Part shown: one piece after another, positions 8,622 through 35,363 of the stretch | Numbering within the stretch: position 1 is the stretch's first letter | Layout of the letters: each line of letters opens with the position of its first letter | Notes under the pieces: generated by a model | Told to the model about the DNA's origin: nothing | The model's input: only the letters and a program-made list of their open reading frames with translations | The model's database searches: none | Origin: Chrysemys picta bellii | Taxonomy: Eukaryota | DNA length: 64,000 nucleotides | NCBI RefSeq assembly: GCF_011386835.1 | Contig: NC_088792.1 | Coordinates: 226,052,001 to 226,116,000, forward strand | Reading direction: 5' to 3' | Position numbers and translations under genes: made by a program

Positions 8622-11191
8622 TACCACTGTTTGTTTCTTTCTTTTTTCTTAATAAAGTTTTTTAAGATGAAGAGAAGACGTGTAGCCTCGTGACTAAAGT
8701 AGGGGACCTCGGAACTCTTGGATTCTGACCAAGTCTGCCACTAAATTGCTCTGTGACCTTTTGCCCTAAACACTGCAGTGCTCTCAGTTTATCCTTCATC
8801 CTCAGGGTGCTGTAAAGCTTAGCTCCTTAATATTTAATGGCTTACAGATCTTTGAACCAAAGGAGCTATTGAAATATCAAGTACCACTGTGCTAATTATA
8901 CTGGTGAATACCCTTTGTTTATTTTTGAATGTATGTTGGAACGTCACATTCATATGTAAACGGTGATCAAATAGGAATCAGGAAAAAAAATTGCTCCATT
9001 AAGAAGTGGGGCATAGCCACCTAAATTCCCCTAATATAAGTACTGCATTCACAGGAGTATTACAGACTTTGCAAAGACACAAACTGCCGACTTTGTTGCT
9101 AGTGTAACTAACAAAAAGGTCAGAAGTTTGTGTCTTTGCAAAGTCTGTAATACCCCTGTTGCTTTGCAGATTTGGCATGTAACTAATATGTAAATGAACA
9201 TATCTTGGCTGTTACAATTTTTTCCCCTCAGGAACAGACAGAACATGGTCCACTTTAGTTCTACTGGCACCGGGCAGCTCAGAAAATTCTGATTCTTGCA
9301 ACCAAAATATGTAAGAACCAACTATTAACAAAAGTTTATGTTTAAAAATTGGAGCCATTTATTGTTGGGATATTGGGGAAATCTGTTTAAAATACCATCT
9401 AAAACACAATAATTGGTGACCTCATAGCTTTATAGATTTTAAGACCATGCAGGAACATTACAATAATTGTATCTGACCTGCTGCAGCATTCTGGCCATCG
9501 GATTTCACACAGTAATTCAATCATTGAGCCCAATATCTTGGGGCTGAACTAGAGCAGATCTCTTAGAAAGGCATCCAGTCTTGATTTAAAGACTCCACAT
9601 GGTAGAGAATCTATCACAGCCCATGATAAGCTCTTCCAATAGCTAATTTCCCTTAGAATTAAAAAATTGCATTTTATGTCCAGTTTGAAATGTTCTGATT
9701 TCAACCTCCACGCATGTTGTTATGAACCCTTTGGCTCTGCCTGCTGTGGGCATACCATATCTACTGGCCATAGCTATCCTAACTAGTCTTCTGGCTGGCA
9801 GCCTGGAAAATGCTAGCGTTCTAAGGGTTACTGGATTACAATTGTTCTTTGCATACAAAATTCACATCTGTTCTGACAACTTATTTCAGCCTGATGCAAC
9901 TTGAAAAGGTCGAGATTAATCCCAGCAAATCAGAGTTCTATTGGAAAGGCCAAATCAACTTTAATTGTAACACATTGGTATTGATATTGGCATTTAGCTA
10001 CAGTGGAATAGTATTCATTCCATTGGCCTTATTTGTTTGATTCTGAGCTATCAGTTATCATCTATAACAAATGCTAAACTGCCTTTTCAGTGACATCAAA
10101 AAAACCCAACAACCTATATTTTTCCTTTTACAGCTTTCCACTGACCCAAGATATACTATGTGTATGTTTTACGACTTTTGTTTATCTGCAGGCTGGGAAA
10201 GAATTGTAGATGAAAACCTTGGCTCATTTTATAAAGATTAATGGTGTTGTCTATACTTCTGCACATCATACTATTGTGTTGTCTTTATCCATGATGGCCC
10301 ACAGTGCATGTGCAAAAGCCTGAAGAAGCATTAATTTTGGAATTGTGTCTCTTATAAACCTTTGATCACAGATTCTGACAGTTTTAAAAACTCTTTGCAT
10401 ATAACAGTTGCAACCTGTGGTTTGTCTGTGTTCATGAGATGACTAACAGCATTACCCACTCTCTACATGTGGGCCATGTTCTTCTAGCACCTTTCTAACC
10501 ACCTACTGGCTTCCGGTATCTGTTATCAGCTCAGCCATCAGCCATAAACTGACATTTCAGCTTTCAGAACCCAAAAAAGTGACAGGAGGGGCAAAAGAGA
10601 CAGAGAGCAAGAGAGAAAAGGAGAGACTCATTTGGCAATACTTTGCTTTTGCTATTTGGCCTGGAGAAAGCTACTCAAAGTAGTATAAGATTGTTTAGTA
10701 ACAGCTGGCAAGCACCCGGGTGTGAGCCTGATTTTCAGATATGACAGGCACTTACAGGAATGTTGCCAGATACAGCTGTTTAAAGACTTAATAAACAGCA
10801 AGTCAATACTAATCTTTGCCAAATTAATCTTTTCCTTGACAGCCCATCAGAGCAATTATGCTCGGGCTCATTGTAAACACACAACTGTCAGTGTGCGAGG
10901 CTCCGATCTGCAGTATACTGTAGATTTGTGCACAGAGCCTTTTTTTCAGAACAGGAAGCTTTTTTTTCCTATTTTATTTTTCTAACTACCTATGTTTTTC
11001 CTTGCATTGGATCAGCGGGAATGAAATTTGCCTTATAAAGTGTCTTTCCCAGCAAACCCTTAATAGAATGTGAAATGTTGACAGTTGTAGGATCCATGTG
11101 GCTGTACATTTACGAGTAGGTTTCTTTAAGTAGGCAGTTACCATGACAGATTCTGAAATGTTCCAAGTCATCTTTCTCACTTGTCCCCTCA

Positions 11192-12455: not shown

Positions 12456-12701
12456 TCCTGGCCAGGTCTGTTTTCAATGACAATTTATTGCCTTTTACAA
12501 GTCATCAGAATGGAAATGGTTGTTAATTTGCTTTAATGGAAGAAATGATCTCCGTCAGTGTCTGTTATTTTGATATCAAAGTTGGATGCCTTTGCCATGT
12601 TTGCATTATTTATCTTAGTTGTATTTTTTTAATTGATAGGTTGTTTTTATTTCTGTATTCTTCACCTATCACTTGGCTCTACACATGTGCCTTAGCTGAG
12701 C
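12456..12701 (+). repeat. 246-bp direct duplication, copy 2
   Basis: Same start (TCCTGGCCAGGTCTG) and end (TTAGCTGAGC) as 11192-11437. Confidence 0.95.
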
Positions 12702-25290: not shown

Positions 25291-28200
25291 ACAGCTACAG
25301 ATCTACAATTCTTAATGATACATTTATTTTTAAACAGTTTTATTCTTTTAAATTAATTTAAAATTATTTTAAAAGAATAAAATTTGTAAATATAGTAAAT
25401 TAATTATGTAATTAAACTAAATTTAACATTCTGTACGACAAGTTGTCTATCTGTTCTTAAAAATATACTTAAACATATAAATGAATGTTAAACAAACATT
25501 ACAAAACAAAGTCCATTGAATAGACTTTGCAGAGTCTCAGGCAGTTTGTAGCCTTCAAATACAAAATGGCACCATAAGATGTATGTACTCCATCCCACAC
25601 ATGCTTCGTGATATTTAGAGGGGAAATGTAGCCATTTTCCTAAGATCAGCAGCACAGCCTTTCAACAGCTAATAAGTACCTGTCACCATGAATGAAACTC
25701 AGAAACCTCTCAGAAAATGCACATTAGGAATCAGGCCTGCAGCAGCGCTAGTCTCTAGGCAACCCACAACAGCAGTTGGCCTGCAGCTGGTTGCCTGATT
25801 GGCTACACCACCACATTGGCTGGAAGGGCCAGCAGACTGACTCTTAAGCCAGCAAGCTCCAGAGCTCACTGGCTGCTCAATGCTCACACCCACCACTGTG
25901 AGGAGTGGGCTGACAGCGTGCCTTGATTCTCTTGAGACCGTCAGCATTCTTGTGCACAACACCCCAGCCATATCAGTTTTAACTAGCATTGGAATCCAGG
26001 CAAGTCCCCTAGACCCGCACACACCTCTCCAATGCAGAGAAGTACCGACACTGGATGTTAGGCCTATGCTTATACTGAGGGGATCCCAGCCATCTTGTTT
26101 TGAGATGCCTGGCATAGACTCTGGCAGCGCTGAGGCTGGGAAACACTAGGCTCCCAGCCCCAAGGAGCTGGTCTGTGCTGTCTAGGTCTTCCCCTCCCCT
26201 GGTAGTCCTCAGAACCCACAAGCCATAGTCGGCAGAGCCAGACCATCAAGCCAGTTTTTGATGATGCTCCACATATGTCTACTGATTCAACTATTTGCAA
26301 GCCCCAACATTCACCAAGAGGCCCTCGTTGACTTTGGGCCTTGGGTAATTTTATGGACCTGAACTTTGCTGAGGTCCATGCAATTCCCACCATACACAAG
26401 AATTCTCCAGATCTGGTTGAATCTGCTGATGGGTCCCTTCTCTCCTTGGGAGACAAGACCTGCCAGTGATAGTTGTCACTCTCTGGGGTCATCAGGAAAC
26501 CCTCAGATTTGGGCTAATCTGGGCCCCCCATGCTCTGGAAATCGTAGGTATGCCCTGGCTTACTATCCAATACCTCCACATTTGCTGGTGGAAGGAGACA
26601 CTACACTTTAGTTCTTGATATTGCCGGCTGTCCTGCCTCCCAGGATCCAAGAACTGGACTGGTACGCTCTACACGTGATAATGCAAACCTCAGAGAGCAA
26701 GGCACCAGGACCTCAGGGCCACTCACATCTCTGTCTGCCTCAGCTGAGATCCTCCACAAATACCGTGACTCTGTTAATGTTTTTGACAAGGGAAAGGCAG
26801 ACATTCTGCCCCCGCATCAGAATTATGACTCCCTCAATGACCTCCAACCTGTAGCAGAGATCCCAATAAGTCAGATATATGCCAGAACTTCAGACTCTCC
26901 CCATGTATTTTCAGGAGAACCTACAGAAGGGTTTCATCTGCCCATCCACATCTCCGGCAAGTGCCCAATATTTTTTGCCAAGAAGATGGATGACTCATTG
27001 TGGCCTTGTATCGATTATGGGGCCTCAACAAAGTGACCATACGAAACTGCTCACTGCTCCCCCTCATAAGCAAACTCAGACTGGCTACATGCAGCTCACA
27101 TTTTCACTAAGTTAGACCTGCAGAGGCCTATAACCTGGTGTTTGTGGGAGATGAATGGAAGACTGGCTTTCATACTCAATATGGTCATTATGAATATCTG
27201 GTCATGCCGCTCAGCCCATGCAATGCTCCAGCAACTTTTCAACACTTTATGAATGATATATTTTGGGATATACTGGACCAATCTGTCATTATTTACCTTG
27301 ACACCCTAATTTCTTCTGAGGGCAAAGTTCTTCAGGACCAGCACCTGGGCGGCATTCTTGAAAGACTATGCCAGAATCACCTATGTATCAAGCTGGAGAA
27401 ATGTGTATCTGACTGGGACATCCTTAAATTTCTCGGGGATATTATCTCATTTAACAGACTGGCAATGGAACCCCACAAAGTGGCAGCCAGCATGGAATGG
27501 GCGTGACTAAAGGATGCACACAGAATCCAATACTTCTTGGCTTTTGTTAACTTCTACGACTGATTAAGAGAGCTTTAAACTAGGAATTGGGGGAAGATGG
27601 TTGGGAGATGTCCAGGTAATCTCCACGCTGGATTTTAACATTGAAAGGGAAGAAAATGAAGTAAGAAAGGATACAGCTGTGGGTAGGAGAATGGACATAC
27701 GGAGGAAGGGTAGTGTAGATACCATTCTAATAGGTGATACTGGTGGTAGAATGTCTGGGCCTAATTGGGTAAAGAATGTGAGCGAAGCCAAACAGCAAGA
27801 ATTAAGATGTTTGTACACCAATGCAAGGAGCCTAGGTAACAAAATGGAGGAACTAGAGTTACTGGTGCAGGACGTGAAACCGGATTTTATGGGGATAACA
27901 GAAACATGGTGGAATAGTAGTCATGACTGGAGTACAGGTATTGAAGGGTATGTGCTGTTTAGGAAAGACAGAAATAAAGGCAAAGCTGGTGGAGTAGCAT
28001 TGTATATCAATGATGAGGTAGAAAAAAGCAGTGGTGGAATGGATAAGACTGTAAAGAAATAAGAAGGGATGGAATGGATAAGACAGAGTCTGTCTGAGCA
28101 AAAATCACATTGGGGAAGAAAGCTACTATAGCCTCCCCTGAGATAGTGTTTGGGGTGTGCTATAGACCACCAGGATCTGATTTGAATATGGATAGAGACC

Positions 28201-30176
28201 TTTTTAATGTTTTTAATGAAGTAAATACTAATGGGAATTGTGTGATCATGGGAGATTAACTTCCTAGATATAGACTGGAGGATAAGTGCTAGTAATAGTA
28301 ATAGGGCTCAGATTTTCCTAGTATGCGATAGCTGATGGATTCCTTCACCAAGTAATTGCTGAACCAACAAGAGGGGATGCCATTTTAGATTTGATTTTGG
28401 TGAGTAGTGAGGACCTCATAGAAGAAATGGTTGTGGGGGACAACCTTGGTTCGAGCGATCATGAGCTAATTCAGTTTAAACTAAATGGAAGGATAAACAA
28501 AAATAGATCTGTGACTGGGTTTTTGATTTCAAAAGGGCTAATTTTAAAAAAATTAAGGAAATTAGTTAGGGAAGTGGATTGGACTGAAGAACTTGTGATC
28601 TAAAGGCAGAGGAGGCCTGGAATTACTTCAAGTCAAAGTTGCAGAAACTATCAGAAGTCTGCATCCCAAGAAAGGGGAAAAAATTCATAGGCAGGAGTTG
28701 TAGACCAAGCTGAATGAGCAAGCATCTCAGAGAGGTGATTAAGAAAAAGCAGAAAGCCTACAACGAGTGGAAGATGGGAGTGATCAGCAAGGAAAGCTAC
28801 CTTATTGAGGTCAGAACATGTAGGGATAAAGTGAGAAAAGCCAAAAGCCATGTAGAGTTGGACCTTGCAAAGGAAATTAAAACCAATAGTAAAAGGCTCT
28901 ATAGCCATATAAATAGGAAGAAAACCAAGAAAGAAGAAGTGGAATCGCTAAACACGGAGGATGGAGTGGAGGTTAAGGATAATCTAGGCATGGCCCAATA
29001 TCTAAACAAATATTTTGCCTCAGTCTTTAATGAGGGTCTTAGGGATAATGGTAGGATGACAAATGGGAATGAGGAAATGGAGGTAGATATTACCACATCC
29101 GAGGTAGAAGCCAAAGTCGAACAGCTTAATGGGACTAAATCGGGGGCCCCAGATAACCTTCATCCAAGAATATTAAAGGAACTGGCACATGAAATTGCAA
29201 GCCCATTAGCAAGAATTTTTAATGAATCTGTAAACTCAGGGGTTGTACCGTATGTCTGGAGAATTGCTAACAGTTCCTATTTTTAAGAAAGGGAAAAAAA
29301 GTGATCCGAGCAACTACAGGCCTGTTAGTTTGACATCTGTAGTATGCAAGGTCTTGGAAAAATTTTTGAAAGAGAAAGTAGTTAAGGACATTGAGGTCAA
29401 TGGTAATTGGGACAAAATCCAACATGGTTTTACAACAGGTAGATCATGCCAAACCAACCTGATCTCCTTCTTTGAGAAGACAACAGACTTTTTAGACAAA
29501 GGAAACGCAGTGGATCTAATTTACCTCGATTTCAGTAAAGCATTTTATACGATTCCACATGGGGAATTATTAGCTAAATTGGAAAAGATGGGGATCAATA
29601 TGAAAATTGAAAGGTGGATAAGGAACTGGTTAAAGGGGAGACTACAACAGGTTGTACTGAAAGGTGAACTGTCAGGCTGGAGGGAGGTTACTAGTGGAGT
29701 TCCTCAGAGATCGGTTTTGGGACCAATCTTATTTAATCTTTTTATTGCGGACCTTGGCACAAAAAAGTGGGAATGTGCTAATAAAGTTTGCGGATGACAC
29801 GAAGCTGGGAGGTATTGCCACTATAGAGAAGGACCAGGATATCATACAGGAAGATCTGGATGACCTTGTAAACTGGAAAGTAATAGGATGAAATTTAATA
29901 GTGAAAAGTGCAAGGTCATGCATTTAGGGATTAATATCAAGAATTGTGGTTATAAGCTGGGGACGCATCAGTTGGAAGTAACAGAGGAAGAGAAGGACTT
30001 CGGAGTATTGGTTGATCACAGGATGACTATTAGCTGCCAATGTGATATGGCCGTGAAAAAAGCTAATGCGGTCTTGGGATGCATCAGGCGAGGTATTTCC
30101 AGTAGAGATAAGGAGGTGTTAGTACCGTTATACAAGGCACTGGTGAGACCTCATCTGGAATACTGTGTGCAGTTCT

Positions 30177-33166
30177 CAGAGGCGTAGCGAGCGCCCTCGG
30201 TACCCTCCAACCGGAGGGGGCCCCGCAAGGAAGGGGGCCCCTAAAAGTGGCAAAAAAAATGTAAGGTATAACTAGGTAAGTGACATTTATTGACGCTATT
30301 GCACAATCCATGTCGGTTTTACTGACAAAACCGTGAAGTCATTATGATACATCATAATGCTATTGGCTACATCAGTTGTCTGTCGGTCAGTTTCGAATTT
30401 TAGTTGGACCCATTCAAAGAATGTGTATTTGCGTTCATAATGGCGGTCGGCGGATAAATGTTATTAATTTAGTTGTTTAATTTTTTATCGTTTGAAACGA
30501 TTAGTTTCCAACGCAGAAGCATGCTTTGTGATGTCTAAGAGAACGTATAAGAGCGGAGCTGGTAAACGAAAGGCAGCAAAAGATGCCAAGAAGGAACTTG
30601 AGAAAATTCCAAAGTTGTCAACGTATTTTGCGCTGCAATCCAATGTACAGGTACAGGCACATGAAACGGACAGCGCTAGCAGCGACGAATCGTATCCAGA
30701 AGTATCCAGAAGTGCTTCAAGTGAGGTCGAAGGTGAATCCAGTTGTTCTACCAAACAAACTGTGACAGATATTCCAGCTGCTGCCGGGAAAGAAGTATCT
30801 GAATCTGAACCACTGACTGATGATCCAGGAGATTGGCCGTCTATAATATCGGACAGGCAAGTGTGTGACATTGTTGCACGTGGCCCACCGCAGCAGAATG
30901 AAAGTTACGAATTTCCATTTAACGAGGAAAGACGGAGGTTCACAAGTACTCATTTCTATCGAACCATGGCAAATGGCGAGAAAATAAGACGTTCATGGTT
31001 AATGTACTCAGTTCAGAAAGATGCCATTTTTTGTTTTTGTTGTAAATTATTTGGCACTGGCGACATACCGCTACGTCGTGGAACATCTGCTTGGAAAGCA
31101 CTGTCAAAAAGACTTCAGCAGCATGAAACAGGCAAAGGTCATCAAGCCTGTATGGTGAAATGGTTTGACCTTCGGTCAGGCATAGTAAACCGTACATCTA
31201 TTGACCAACTCGAATTGCAGGCTTTTCTGAAAGAAAGATTTCTGGAGAAATGTTGTCAAATGCATGGTTGATGTCGTTATTATCTTGTCCAAAAGAAACT
31301 TGCATTTCGAGGAAGTAATGAAAAGCTCGGCGATCCTTCGAATGGCAACTTTTTGGGACTCTTTGAATTGCTTGCAAAGTATGATACTGTCCTCAGCGAA
31401 CTTTTACAGAGGATTAAGAAGGCAGAGACACATGTTCAGTACCTCAGTCCACAGATCCAAAATGAGCTGATTCAACTTGTTGCCAGTAACATTCAAGAGG
31501 CCAACATAGCGCAGCTTAAAAAAGCAAAATATTATTCAGTTATTTTGGACTGTACTCCTGACGTGTCACATGAAGAACAGATGTCTGTGGTGTTACGTTT
31601 TGTTGAATGCAACGGTGAAGATGGTGTCAATATTCGTGAAGCATTTGTTGGTTTTCTTAATGTTCATGATACAACTGGCGAGGGCTTATTGGAAGCATTT
31701 CTTGAAAAGGCAAACAATTTAGGAATACACATTGCTGACATGAGAGGCCAAGCTTATGATAACGGCGCAAATATGAGAGGAAAGAATAAAGGAGTTCAAG
31801 CCCGCATGCTAGAAATAAATGACCGTGCCTTGTATGTACCATGTGGAGCTCACTCTTGGAATCTTGTGATCTCAGACGCGGCAAAGTCATCGAAATATGC
31901 CGTTGACTTTTTCGGTCTGATTAACAGAATATACGTTATCTTTTCTTCTTCACCTTCACGTTGGGATATACTTCAAGAACATATGCCAATATCTGTTAAA
32001 GGCTTATCGGACACTCGTTGGGATTCGAGAATTGATGCTGTGAAGCCATTGTGTTATCACCTTGAAGAATTGTGCAATGCTTTGTTATCTTTGCGAGAAT
32101 ATGCGCTCGAAAAGAAAGATGGCAATACAGCAACAGAAGCCGATGCGCTTTTAGACCATGTTACTACCTGGCCTTTTGTTCTGACTGTGTACACGTGGTA
32201 CGATATACTATTTCACGTCAATAAAACCACCAAATTAATTCAGTCACCAGATGTGTCAATTGACGTACTGCAGGCAGAAGTCAGTGCTACAAAGAAGTTT
32301 TTGGAAGACTATCGAAATACAGGATATATCTCTGTGGCCACAAATGCACGTGAAATAGCAGAGCATATGGGTATTGAGCAGGTGTTTCCAGAAACCAGGG
32401 TGCGACGTAAGAAGAGAATGTTTGATTACGAATGTGCTGATGATTCGAGTCGTCTTTCTGCCGAAGAAAAATTCAAATCGCAGTTCTTTCTTGTTCTCAC
32501 TGATCAGGCCATATCTTCTGTTTCGTCGTGATTTGACCAACTCGTGGAGTGGTATAAGTTGTTTGGATTTCTGTATAACGCTAACAGCCTGAAGCAGTGT
32601 CACAGAGAAAATGAACTGGAGAATCACAGCAAAAATTTTGAAAGAAAAATGGGAGACATTGATGCCAACGAACTCATAATGGAATTGATGCGTTTTATTT
32701 ATGTCATCGAGAAAGAGAGAGGACTTGTCACGGCAAACAATTTTTTAACGTACATATACAAGGCCTTTAGGAGATATATCCGAATCTTTCCATTTGCATC
32801 AGAATTCTTCTGACCACACCAGTTACTGTCGCTGGTGCTGAAAGGAGCTTCAGCAGAATGAAACTGATCAAGAATATCCTGCGCTTAACCATGACAGGCT
32901 TTCTGCACTTGCAGTTATCTCAATCGAAAACAAGATTGCCAGATCTCTGGACTATGACACATTGATTAACCAATTTACGGAGAACAAGGCTCGAAAGAAG
33001 CGCTTTGCGTAAATACGGAATACATGTACACTGTAGGCCTATGTATACATAATATGAACCCTGTATATTGTATAAAATAAATACCGCATTCCAGTTTCTG
33101 CATTGTAAGGGGCCCCACCCGGAAATATGTTCGGAGGGGGCCACGTTCTTTGTTGCTAGGGCCCTG
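30177..33166 (+). mobile_element. Full-length hAT DNA transposon (Tip100/ZMYM-like transposase type), 2990 bp
   Basis: Exact 8-bp TSD GCAGTTCT at 30169-30176 and 33167-33174; removing the insert restores the CR1 ORF2 sequence. Imperfect TIRs CAGAGGCGTAGCGA / CAGGGCCCTAGCAA (10/14). Contains a transposase gene. Confidence 0.96.
30531..33012 (+). pseudogene. hAT transposase pseudogene (~830 codons reconstructed)
   Basis: ATG 30531. TTF-type Zn finger (WLMYS...FCFCCKLF...LQQHE...H). Catalytic-domain motifs YYSVILDCTPD, QAYDNGANM, CGAHSWNL, LSDTRW. C-terminal dimerisation domain TPVTVAGAERSFSRMKLIK...RLSALAVISIE. TAA at 33010-33012, AATAAA at 33076-33081. Lesions: compensating frameshifts near 31238 and 31302, TGA at 32529-32531 (likely from CGA), frameshifts near 32765 and 32896. 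Confidence 0.93.
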
Positions 33167-35363
33167 GCAGTTCTGGTCTCCCATGTTTAAGAAGCATTCA
33201 AACTGGAACAGGTACAGAGAAGGGCTACTAGGATGATCTGAGGAATGGAAAACCTGTCTTATGAAAGGAGACTCAAAGAGCTTGGCTTGTTTAGCCTAAC
33301 CAAAAGAAGGCCGAGGGGAGATATGATTGCCCTCTATAAATATATCAGAGGAATAAATACCAGGGAGGGAGAGGAATTATTTAAGCTCAGTACCAATGTG
33401 GACACAAGAACAAATGGATATAAACTGACCATCAGGAAGTTTAGACTTGAAATTAGATGAAGGTTTCTAACCATCAGAGGAGTGAAGTTCTGGAACAGCC
33501 TTACAAGGGGAGTAGTGGGGGCAAAAGACATATCTGGCTTCAAGACTAAGCTGGATAAGTTTATGGAGGGGATGGTAGGATGGGATAGCCTAATTTTGGC
33601 AATTAATTGGTCTTTGACTATTAGCGGTAAATATGCCCAATGGCTTGTGATGGGATGTTAGATGGGGTGGGATCTGAGTTACTACAGAGAATTCTTTCCT
33701 GGGTGTCTCGCTGGTGAGTCTTGCCCACATGCTCAGGGTTTAGCTGATCGCCATTATTTGGGGTCGGGAAGGAATTTTCATCCAGGGCAGATTGGCAGAG
33801 GGTTTTTTTTTGCCTTCCTCTGCAGCGTGGGGCATGGGTCATTTGCTGGAAGATTCTCTGCATCTTGAAATCTTTAAACCATGATTTGAGGACTTCAATG
33901 GCTCAGATACTGGTCTGATACAGGAGTGGGTGGGTAAGATTCTGTGGCGTGCATTGTGCAGGAGGTCAGACTAGATGATCATAATGGTCCCTTCTGACCT
34001 TAAAGTCTATGATTCTATGATTTATCCCAGGATTCTCTGTGTTAGCTGCTCTGCTCACAGCCCTACTACGGAAGGGAATTCGATTTGTATGATCCCCAGA
34101 AGCTCAGGTTGCTTTTGATAATCTGAAGCAGAGATTCATCAACGGCTCCCATCTGGATTCACCCAGACCCTGCCACACTGTTTATGGTGGAGGCAGATGC
34201 TTTGAACATTGCACTAGGGACAGTTCTAGCCCAATCCGATGCTCTCGAAGAGTGACTTCACCCATGCACATTTTACTCGCGAAAACTCACTCCTGCTGGG
34301 GGGAAATATGACATCCTGGACAAATAACTGCTGGCCATCAAAATGGACTTTGAAGAATGGAGCCACCTTCTGGAAGAGGCTAGATTTCTTGTCCAAGTTC
34401 TCATAGATCATAAAAACTTGGAATACCTTAAGATGGCCAGGCACCTGAAAACACCTGCAGGCATGCTGGTTCCTCTACTTCACGCAATTCAGGTTTGTGG
34501 TCACCTACCCTCCTGGGACAAAGAACAGGAAGGCAGATGCATTGTTGTGGAAGGATGAGAACTTTGATCCTGGAAAAGAAACTAGGTCCACAATCCTCGA
34601 GCCCTCAAACTTCATTTCTTCCATCATAGCCTCCAACCTGATAACCTCTATCCATTCTTAGCTGCCCCACAACCTCTTTGCCATCCAAATCCATCAAGCC
34701 TTAGACCAAGAGCAGGACCAGACCTCTGCCGCATTCATGTTCCAGGACAGGATCTGGTATCATAAAGGATGCATATATGTACCTGAAGGGTCTACTGAGC
34801 TTCAAGTCCTACAACTCGGCCATGATGCTCCCGTGGAGGGCCACTCTGGCTGTTCCAAGATGCAAGACCTAGTGTCTGGGAGCTTTTGGTGGTCAGCTGT
34901 ATGTGTCTTGTTTTGCCTTACGTAGTCTCCTGTGATATTTGCACCCAGACCAAGACACCCTGTTCAAGACTGCTGGGTCTCCTCCAAACCTTACCCACTC
35001 TGCCCTGGTTTTGGGCTATCGTTTCCATGTACTTTATCATGGAATTACCACCCTCCCAAGGCCACACTACAATTCTAGGGATGATCAACCACTTAACCAA
35101 GATGCCACACTTTGTTGAATACCGGGCGCTTCCCTCTGCTCAGGAAACAGCCCACTTGTTTGTGAACAACATCTTTCCTCTTCATGGCTTACCTCTGAGT
35201 ATGGTATCTGTCTGGGGACCAGGGTTTATTTCCTGCTTCTGGTGGGAATTCCCATGCCACCTGAGTATAAACATGCTAACCTCTATGGCCTATCACCCAA
35301 GCAACACCTCAGTCTGAGGACGACAATTAGATCCTAGAACATAACCTATGTTACTTTCTAAAC

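Follow-up and report, generated by a model that had tools for sequence, protein, structure and literature searches.

Structure of the insert in the TOX intron

The window analyzed here is the whole 64,000-bp stretch of the genome of the turtle Chrysemys picta bellii that was available (RefSeq assembly GCF_011386835.1, contig NC_088792.1, positions 226,052,001 to 226,116,000 of the forward strand). An intron of the TOX gene contains an insert of 2,990 bp at window positions 30177-33166, which is a hAT DNA transposon. All tested features that define the hAT superfamily were found in this element, namely, an 8-bp target-site duplication, short terminal repeats, a dimerization domain, and the blocks of the transposase core. 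Taken as a whole, the data make it quite likely that the insert is a dead autonomous hAT copy whose family entered turtles horizontally, probably by more than one transfer. The features of the insert (window positions) are as follows:

30169-30176: left target-site duplication, GCAGTTCT, 8 bp, same as 33167-33174
30177-33166, plus strand: full-length dead hAT transposon, collinear from end to end (95-96%) with a C. picta copy (L002) and a Malaclemys copy (L004)
30177-30188, plus strand: left terminal inverted repeat, CAGAGGCGTAGC; the first 12 bases of a metagenome relative (L001) are identical
30213-30241, plus strand: two subterminal GGAGGGGGCCCC-like motifs
30531-31235, plus strand: transposase frame segment 1 with the TTF-type zinc-finger region at 30987-31151; 2-bp deletion after 31235
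31236-31301, plus strand: frame segment 2, in a shifted frame; 1-bp deletion after 31301
31302-32528, plus strand: frame segment 3, DUF4371/RNase-H-like core (PF14291, Pfam 1.8e-18), with the blocks ILDCTPD (31542-31562), GQAYDNGANMRG (31746-31781), CGAHSWNL (31842-31865), and SDTRWDSR (32007-32030)
32529-32531, plus strand: in-frame stop codon formed by a C-to-T change at a former CpG, private to the window copy
32532-32762, plus strand: frame segment 4, in the frame of segment 3, ending at a 4-bp deletion after 32762
32763-32890, plus strand: frame segment 5, in a shifted frame, hAT dimerization domain with the block AGAERSFS (32831-32854); 7-bp deletion after 32890
32891-33012, plus strand: frame segment 6, in the third frame, C-terminal tail with the TAA codon at 33010-33012
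33133-33144, plus strand: third subterminal motif, GGAGGGGGCC(A)C
33155-33166, plus strand: right terminal inverted repeat, whose reverse complement is CAGGGCCCTAGC
33167-33174: right target-site duplication, GCAGTTCT, an exact match to the left copy

The transposase frame extends from the ATG codon at 30531 to the TAA codon at 33010-33012 and would comprise 831 codons if it were free of lesions. Exactly five lesions disrupt it, namely, four small frameshifting deletions and one nonsense codon. All of them are private to the window copy: they are absent in the other turtle copies that cover each site and, where it reaches, in the outgroup, and none was found in the collapsed element contigs of four sequencing runs. 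The first-pass annotation, which was made from the sequence without database searches, had described an intronless transposase of about 830 codons with hAT motifs, five disabling lesions, and an exact target-site duplication. This description was confirmed by the 831 lesion-free codons, Pfam domains, and conserved blocks, by the mapped lesions, and by the 8-bp GCAGTTCT sequence on both sides.

For the domain analysis, pieces of the frame were searched separately, and natural relatives were used as further queries. The pattern at 30987-31151 corresponds to a TTF-type zinc finger according to the UniProt naming of relatives ("TTF-type domain-containing protein"). The Pfam families PF14291 and PF27073 match the transposase relatives. 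The dimerization domain Dimer_Tnp_hAT (PF05699) was detected at 32771-32962 (Pfam 5.6e-8), and the same domain is precomputed for relatives. The blocks ILDCTPD, GQAYDNGANMRG, CGAHSWNL, SDTRWDSR, and AGAERSFS form nearly invariant columns when the transposase is aligned with relatives from Hydra, fishes, plants, and an aphid. Judging from this conservation, the D, D, E, CxxH, and RW residues are predicted to belong to a DDE catalytic core of the RNase-H-like type. A sequence search of the solved structures in the Protein Data Bank (PDB) found no transposase.

The sequences CAGAGGCGTAGC and CAGGGCCCTAGC agree at 9 of 12 bases in the window copy and thus represent imperfect 12-bp inverted repeats; these termini are conserved across the turtle copies and the metagenome relative. 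The GGAGGGGGCCCC motif has three matches in the window, all of them in the ends of the element, at a chance expectation of 0.3, and it is possibly a binding site of the transposase.

The element interrupts an old long interspersed nuclear element (LINE), the two parts of which are located on the plus strand:

29234-30168, plus strand: upstream part of the interrupted LINE, with the RVT_1 domain at 29234-29794 (E-value 1.3e-23) and a CR1-like C-terminal motif, CR1 being a label by likeness
33175-34012, plus strand: downstream part of the same LINE; the high multi-copy depth stops near 34012-34077

When the insert is removed, the flanks form a single continuous LINE reading frame, with ...LEYCVQF on one side of the junction and WSP... 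on the other. The LINE has very high multi-copy depth and a CpG observed/expected ratio (o/e) of about 0.24. Since the flanks belong to this high-copy LINE, Logan contigs break at the insertion junction. Upstream of the interrupted LINE, positions 27111-27503 contain a second RVT_1 fragment (2.2e-8), which differs from the LINE in frame and context and probably represents an old retroelement of its own. Runs of N occupy positions 15560-15838, 21843-21974, and 21994-22134 of the window.

Copies of the family in turtles and relatives outside turtles

The abundance of the family was assessed in four public runs that diverge from the window by 0.6-1.3% in adjacent single-copy DNA. In all four, the depth of the collapsed element contigs was 16-27 times that of the adjacent single-copy contig, and these contigs differed from the window copy by about 1.4%; the depth is an indication of a family of some tens of copies, depth not being copy number. 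The extreme termini reached 100-400 times the single-copy depth. In three of the four runs, a contig joins position 30251 to 33074 (window 30178-30251 and 33074-33166), which corresponds to an internally deleted derivative of roughly 170 bp resembling a miniature inverted-repeat transposable element. Such short derivatives probably far outnumber the full-length copies. Contigs from nine studies, with nine organism labels, contain about 61% of the 31-mers of the element, as is predicted when the divergence from a common majority sequence is about 1.5%.

Related proteins were searched by a word-based method using a 419-residue piece of the transposase and a 793-residue natural relative as queries. 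Proteins with 83-94% identity were found only in C. picta, Terrapene, Malaclemys, Mauremys mutica, Gopherus agassizii, G. evgoodei, and Chelonoidis abingdonii; the next-best proteins after those of turtles (Hydra vulgaris and unnamed sequences) show 51-54%. Among annotated proteins, none exceeding 55% was found in sea turtles, softshells, crocodilians, birds, and other vertebrates, which suggests absence of the family from them. RefSeq and UniProt already contain entries for the family proteins of several turtles, named either "ZMYM1-like" or "TTF-type domain" proteins.

Three of the proteins deserve separate mention. In P0122, the RefSeq model of a C. picta copy, the first 38 residues are off the transposase frame when compared with window positions 30583-30696; this C. 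picta copy is therefore frameshifted near its start, and the N-terminus of the model is not native. The G. agassizii proteins P0128 and P0003 share 13 amino acid changes, several of them radical, that occur in no other turtle copy; they likely represent a decayed copy that was later duplicated (by segmental duplication or as redundant assembly) and not an active subfamily. P0013, named [quoted passage not shown] (MAG, metagenome-assembled genome), is a eukaryote-type hAT transposase with 52% identity to the query and probably reflects eukaryotic DNA mis-binned in a cyanobacterial MAG.

For the comparison of nucleotide sequences, the window copy and six other copies (L002-L005, L009, and L010) from the families Emydidae, Geoemydidae, and Testudinidae were used. 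L002 from C. picta and L004 from Malaclemys are full-length copies sharing 95-96% identity with the window copy, and the Mauremys copy (L005) is internally deleted. The three copies of the Galapagos tortoise, Chelonoidis abingdonii (L003:9661-11445, L009:9661-11445, and L010:9661-11436) belong to one deletion derivative of about 1.78 kb, in which element position 1739 is joined to 2928. They are located at different sites, each has a perfect 8-bp duplication of its own (GGCAGGGA, CCTGTGCC, and ACTTCGGC, respectively), and they are 0.9-1.0% apart. This derivative is a non-autonomous subfamily mobilized fairly recently in the giant-tortoise lineage, and a working transposase must therefore have been present in that lineage at that time. 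No shared flanks were found among the seven turtle loci, a sample too small for orthologous sites to be expected. The C. picta copy L002 has no matching target duplication (9587-9594 and 12583-12590, with GTACACAC on the left and TAAGTGAG on the right), which suggests a rearrangement after insertion or recombination between two copies.

Outside turtles, the closest relatives were found in metagenome contigs. The contig L001 (ENA ERZ27247802) aligns from the very first base of the element, has the identical 12-bp end, and shows an identity of 86% in the core and 81% overall. ERZ27247800 (L006, 98.5%), JGI 3300027544 (L007, 98.6%), and Ga0056116 (L011, 99.6% over 5.2 kb) represent the same locus or family; in all three, the alignment likewise starts at base 1 of the element and includes an identical terminal repeat. 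Ga0056115, Ga0081606, Ga0209366, and Ga0209782 contain more distant versions. Between the metagenome relative and the turtle copies, the Kimura two-parameter (K2P) distance is about 18.5%, the synonymous divergence (dS) 0.31-0.38, and the ratio of nonsynonymous to synonymous divergence (dN/dS) 0.23-0.34; therefore, the turtle and metagenome lineages diverged as working transposases. High identity to distant taxa had been anticipated for a transferred element; it was indeed found in the metagenome contigs (81-86% at the DNA level), but at a divergence of about 18.5% their organism is not the direct donor.

These contigs come from a host that appears in two metagenome projects independent of each other and is probably not a turtle. 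The flanks of the element in the contigs have a CpG o/e of 0.59-0.80 as compared with 0.23 in the turtle. The regions L001:1-3090 and L001:5691-10258 (the same locus as L011) are a nest of pogo-like (DDE_1) transposons, and L001:2133-2576 encodes the C-terminus of a second, unrelated hAT. The close relatives of the flanking pogo-like element are metagenome sequences; the named ones show at most 50% identity and belong mostly to invertebrates and to a few fishes, with no turtle among them. The JGI series may comprise metagenomes of gutless marine oligochaetes. Contaminating host DNA was looked for in bacterial and archaeal genome contigs and not found, and a scan of viral contigs for a virus as a possible vector found no relative.

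CpG content, divergence, and origin of the family

The CpG o/e of the element is 0.874 (113 CpGs) as compared with 0.231 in the rest of the window and 0.24 in each flank; 3-kb background windows have a mean of 0.22, a standard deviation of 0.08, and a maximum of 0.42. The richness in CpG relative to host DNA pointed out earlier is thus evident in the comparison of the insert with its flanks. The majority state among the turtle copies, taken as the founder, contains 131 CpGs with an o/e of 0.97, and the elements in the metagenome relatives have 0.92-0.93. Among the 39 private substitutions of the window copy, 14 are CpG-to-TpG/CpA changes. The rate of change is about 5.5% per CpG site as compared with about 0.9% elsewhere, and about 11% of the founder CpGs have been lost so far. 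Since CpG sites change roughly six times faster than the other sites, the window copy is methylated and decaying, not protected. Copies at unrelated loci, taken from four species, show CpG decay of the same kind. Two factors account for the high CpG content, namely, the moderately young age of the copy and the absence of CpG depletion in its founder. An origin in a lineage with little CpG depletion, as proposed in the first-pass annotation, agrees with the values for the founder, for the metagenome relatives, and for their flanks, but these values do not name the lineage.

The window copy carries 1.38% private substitutions, as compared with 1.7-2.5% for the other copies from pond turtles, 2.1% for Mauremys, and about 0.4% for Chelonoidis. 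The K2P distance between the window copy and the Chelonoidis copies is 2.3-2.5%, other cross-family pairs show 2.8-4.5%, and pairs within Emydidae 3.3-4.4%. The maximum-likelihood tree is star-like, with tips of 1.2-2.7% in pond turtles, 1.7% in Mauremys, and 0.35-0.47% in Chelonoidis, and with a tortoise stem of 0.17%. The Chelonoidis copies nest among the pond-turtle copies with weak support (60-90), which is too little signal for a comparison with the host tree.

The host clock was taken from the per-gene table of synonymous divergence (Ks) of Tollis et al. (2017, PMC5451010), who give no numerical turtle substitution rates in their text or S5 Table, and a host split of about 74 My (million years; 74.2 My) was used. 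Between C. picta and G. agassizii, the median Ks of the first 106 genes is about 0.083, and the range in 17 genes longer than 3 kb is 0.040-0.129 (PMC5451010). The dS of the transposon between pond-turtle and Chelonoidis copies is 0.029-0.046 (NG86 method, about 440 codons), which is below all but about 8% of the 106 host genes, yet only about two-fold under the median. The expectation of a dS far below that of host genes was accordingly realized in direction (0.029-0.046 versus about 0.083), but not to the extent implied. With respect to the metagenome organism, such a contrast with host neutral sites would hold only if that organism is not a turtle. The cross-family copies are about half as diverged as host synonymous sites, though a CpG-rich element should change faster. 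The dN/dS among the turtle copies is 0.37-0.84, and a neutral simulation with CpG hypermutability gave 0.70 (range 0.43-1.20); the turtle copies therefore drift neutrally. A first run on one block of 212-409 codons had indicated purifying selection and a host-like dS; this result was dropped after all blocks were rerun with the neutral simulation.

A comparison at the level of founders provides a stronger argument for horizontal transfer than dS. The ancestor of the Chelonoidis derivative and the pond-turtle founder are separated by three real fixed differences in about 1,730 bp; six further apparent fixed differences of Chelonoidis were discounted as misalignment at the deletion breakpoint. 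By our own estimate from host Ks, two master lineages kept apart since the host split would be expected to differ at roughly 17-34 synonymous or non-coding sites.

According to the host synonymous clock, the age of the window copy would be roughly 25 My, with a range of 15-45 My wide enough to take in uncertainty about the split date, the estimator, and the CpG excess. By the same clock, the Chelonoidis derivative would be roughly 8 My old. The arrival of the element had earlier been called fairly recent, which is too strong a wording for a copy with 1.38% private substitutions, an age of roughly 25 My, and CpG decay under way.

Horizontal acquisition of the family is well supported because it was found only in testudinoid turtles, because a nearly single founder is shared by three turtle families, and because its nearest other kin (81-86%) reside in what is probably a non-turtle eukaryote from metagenomes. 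A founder without CpG depletion (o/e 0.97) would have entered testudinoid turtles from outside, and the family would not be a long-standing component of amniote genomes. At the locus studied, the transposase excised the element at its 12-bp terminal repeats and inserted it into the old LINE in the TOX intron, duplicating 8 bp; the copy later acquired its 1.38% of private substitutions, four frameshifting deletions, and one nonsense change, and it decays neutrally. That more than one transfer occurred after the turtle families split is unproven, and we lean toward it rather than hold it firmly. The fuller scenario is offered tentatively: one Tip100-like family, with its reservoir in an invertebrate represented in host-associated metagenomes, may have jumped repeatedly, within the last few tens of My, into pond turtles, Asian pond turtles, and tortoises, and may still have been mobile about 8 My ago in the lineage leading to the Galapagos giant tortoise.

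Other explanations of the insert were considered together with the evidence for and against them. Its composition is foreign to the flanks, as would be the case if foreign DNA had been placed in a turtle scaffold by contamination or misassembly; but the exact 8-bp duplication and the LINE that is seamless without the insert, the occurrence of the family in contigs of nine organism labels from nine studies, and the copies with their own flanks in chromosome-scale assemblies of four other turtle species make such an artifact extremely improbable. Hardly any credence can be given to a domesticated host gene, a ZMYM1-like paralog, either: the name of the relatives in RefSeq ("zinc finger MYM-type protein 1-like") speaks for it, whereas the terminal repeats, target duplication, and multicopy nature of the family, the five disabling lesions with neutral drift, and the copies at unrelated loci speak against it. 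An o/e of 0.87 is typical of unmethylated DNA, and an old resident element might have kept its CpGs by escaping germline methylation in the manner of a CpG island. This explanation is very improbable in view of the 14 CpG transitions among the 39 private changes, which correspond to decay at the methylated rate, the total divergence from the founder of merely 1.38%, and the same CpG decay at unrelated loci in four species.

A single invasion of the stem of Testudinoidea, followed by a burst and by vertical descent only, has to be taken more seriously, the low divergence being then a product of the slow turtle clock. It agrees with the star-like phylogeny without host-specific clades, with the similar root-to-tip distances in Emydidae and Mauremys (1.4-2.5%), and with a Gopherus divergence that approaches the host per-lineage value, and seven loci are too few to expect shared orthologous sites. 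On the other hand, the cross-family distances are about half of the host Ks despite the CpG-rich nature of the element. The Chelonoidis derivative moved to at least three sites 0.35-0.47% ago, and its founder gap is just 3 in 1,730, whereas a vertical master lineage should show the roughly 17-34 neutral changes estimated above; the Gopherus copies also indicate that tortoises are not generally five times slower. A single entry with vertical descent is, on this evidence, unlikely.

Horizontal entry has its own difficulties, which should be set against the above. Zhang et al. (2020, PMC7070016) reject transfer calls for splits under 120 My, and slow vertical copies can mimic transfer; the turtle families compared here split merely about 74 My ago. 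The dS of the transposon is about half of the host median, and about 8% of host genes are as low. The molecular ages are similar in all three families, as a single ancestral burst predicts, and the Gopherus copies look older, with 3.5-8% of private or shared amino acid change. In addition, the comparison rests on copies at non-orthologous sites, the absence of the family outside Testudinoidea rests on annotated proteins, from which transposons are often masked by annotation pipelines, and the metagenome organism, at about 18.5% divergence, is a cousin of the donor at best. The earlier proposal of a horizontal arrival is thus upheld by the detection of the family in testudinoids only, the shared founder, and a divergence below host Ks, but the single stem entry followed by vertical descent retains a minor share of the probability.

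Comparison with known hAT transposons and significance

Among known systems, the element resembles the Tip family (Tip100, AeTip100-2, hAT-12_HM, and BuT2; Rossato et al. 2014, PMC3942097), which has the same domain order (TTF finger, DUF4371, RNase-H-like core, and dimerization domain), 12-bp terminal repeats, 8-bp duplications, and non-autonomous copies derived by deletion. The nearest named relatives of the transposase come from Hydra (51-54%) and plants (about 45%), both of which are hosts of Tip-family elements, and the identity with any named relative does not exceed 54%. This architecture (Tip100 or "ZMYM1-like") and the best matches in Hydra and plants point to a putative placement in the Tip (Tip100) family.

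The closest parallel in turtles is hAT-6_XT, a hAT with 8-bp duplications that was reported as horizontally transferred into several turtles (Hassan, Galbraith, and Adelson 2024, Mob DNA 15:7; PMC11008031). In that case, too, the argument was built on high similarity, a patchy distribution, and a low level of divergence in a host that evolves slowly. Hassan et al. used a DNA identity to hAT-6_XT of at least 75-80%. The two elements differ in their termini: hAT-6_XT begins with CAGGGGTGTCAAACC..., whereas the present element begins with CAGAGGCGTAGC, and the hAT-6_XT end CAGGGGTGTCAAACCTCAAT had no match in the 64-kb window with up to three mismatches allowed. hAT-6_XT was scored as absent in Gopherus, Chelonoidis, and Mauremys (Table S1, PMC11008031); the present family, in contrast, occurs in all three. 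The pond-turtle copies of hAT-6_XT are less than 1% diverged as compared with 1.4-2.5% in the present family. An identity of the element with hAT-6_XT was ruled out by termini and host range, the DNA comparison being one of termini only.

SPIN and OC1 (hAT-Charlie) are likewise hATs that entered several tetrapod lineages in waves, so that distant hosts share nearly identical founders. The hAT subgroup to which they belong is a different one, with transposases and termini of the Charlie type. SPIN has been reported in the painted turtle (PMC4054807). In a set of 247 animal genomes, hATs account for about 30% of 6,043 horizontal transfer events (PMC12400950). Horizontal transfer of hATs is thus a well-known phenomenon, and the element described here works like any autonomous hAT and resembles the hAT-6_XT case. 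In the literature searched, no paper on the present family or its transfer was found; Repbase and Dfam consensus sequences lay outside that search. The dead copy in the window has no evident effect on TOX.

Turtles were long thought to be nearly closed to incoming transposons. In the literature searched, hAT-6_XT is the one hAT family whose transfer into turtles is documented in detail (PMC11008031), and SPIN elements are listed in the paper on the painted-turtle genome; if an unrelated hAT family shows the same signature, hAT-6_XT was not a one-off. The element also illustrates how foreign, young DNA can be flagged quickly by its CpG o/e when the genome around it is heavily depleted of CpG. 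The presence of the family in land tortoises weakens the idea that an aquatic habitat is required for such transfers. If the family did jump repeatedly into turtles, the same route would deliver DNA into both aquatic and fully terrestrial long-lived reptiles.

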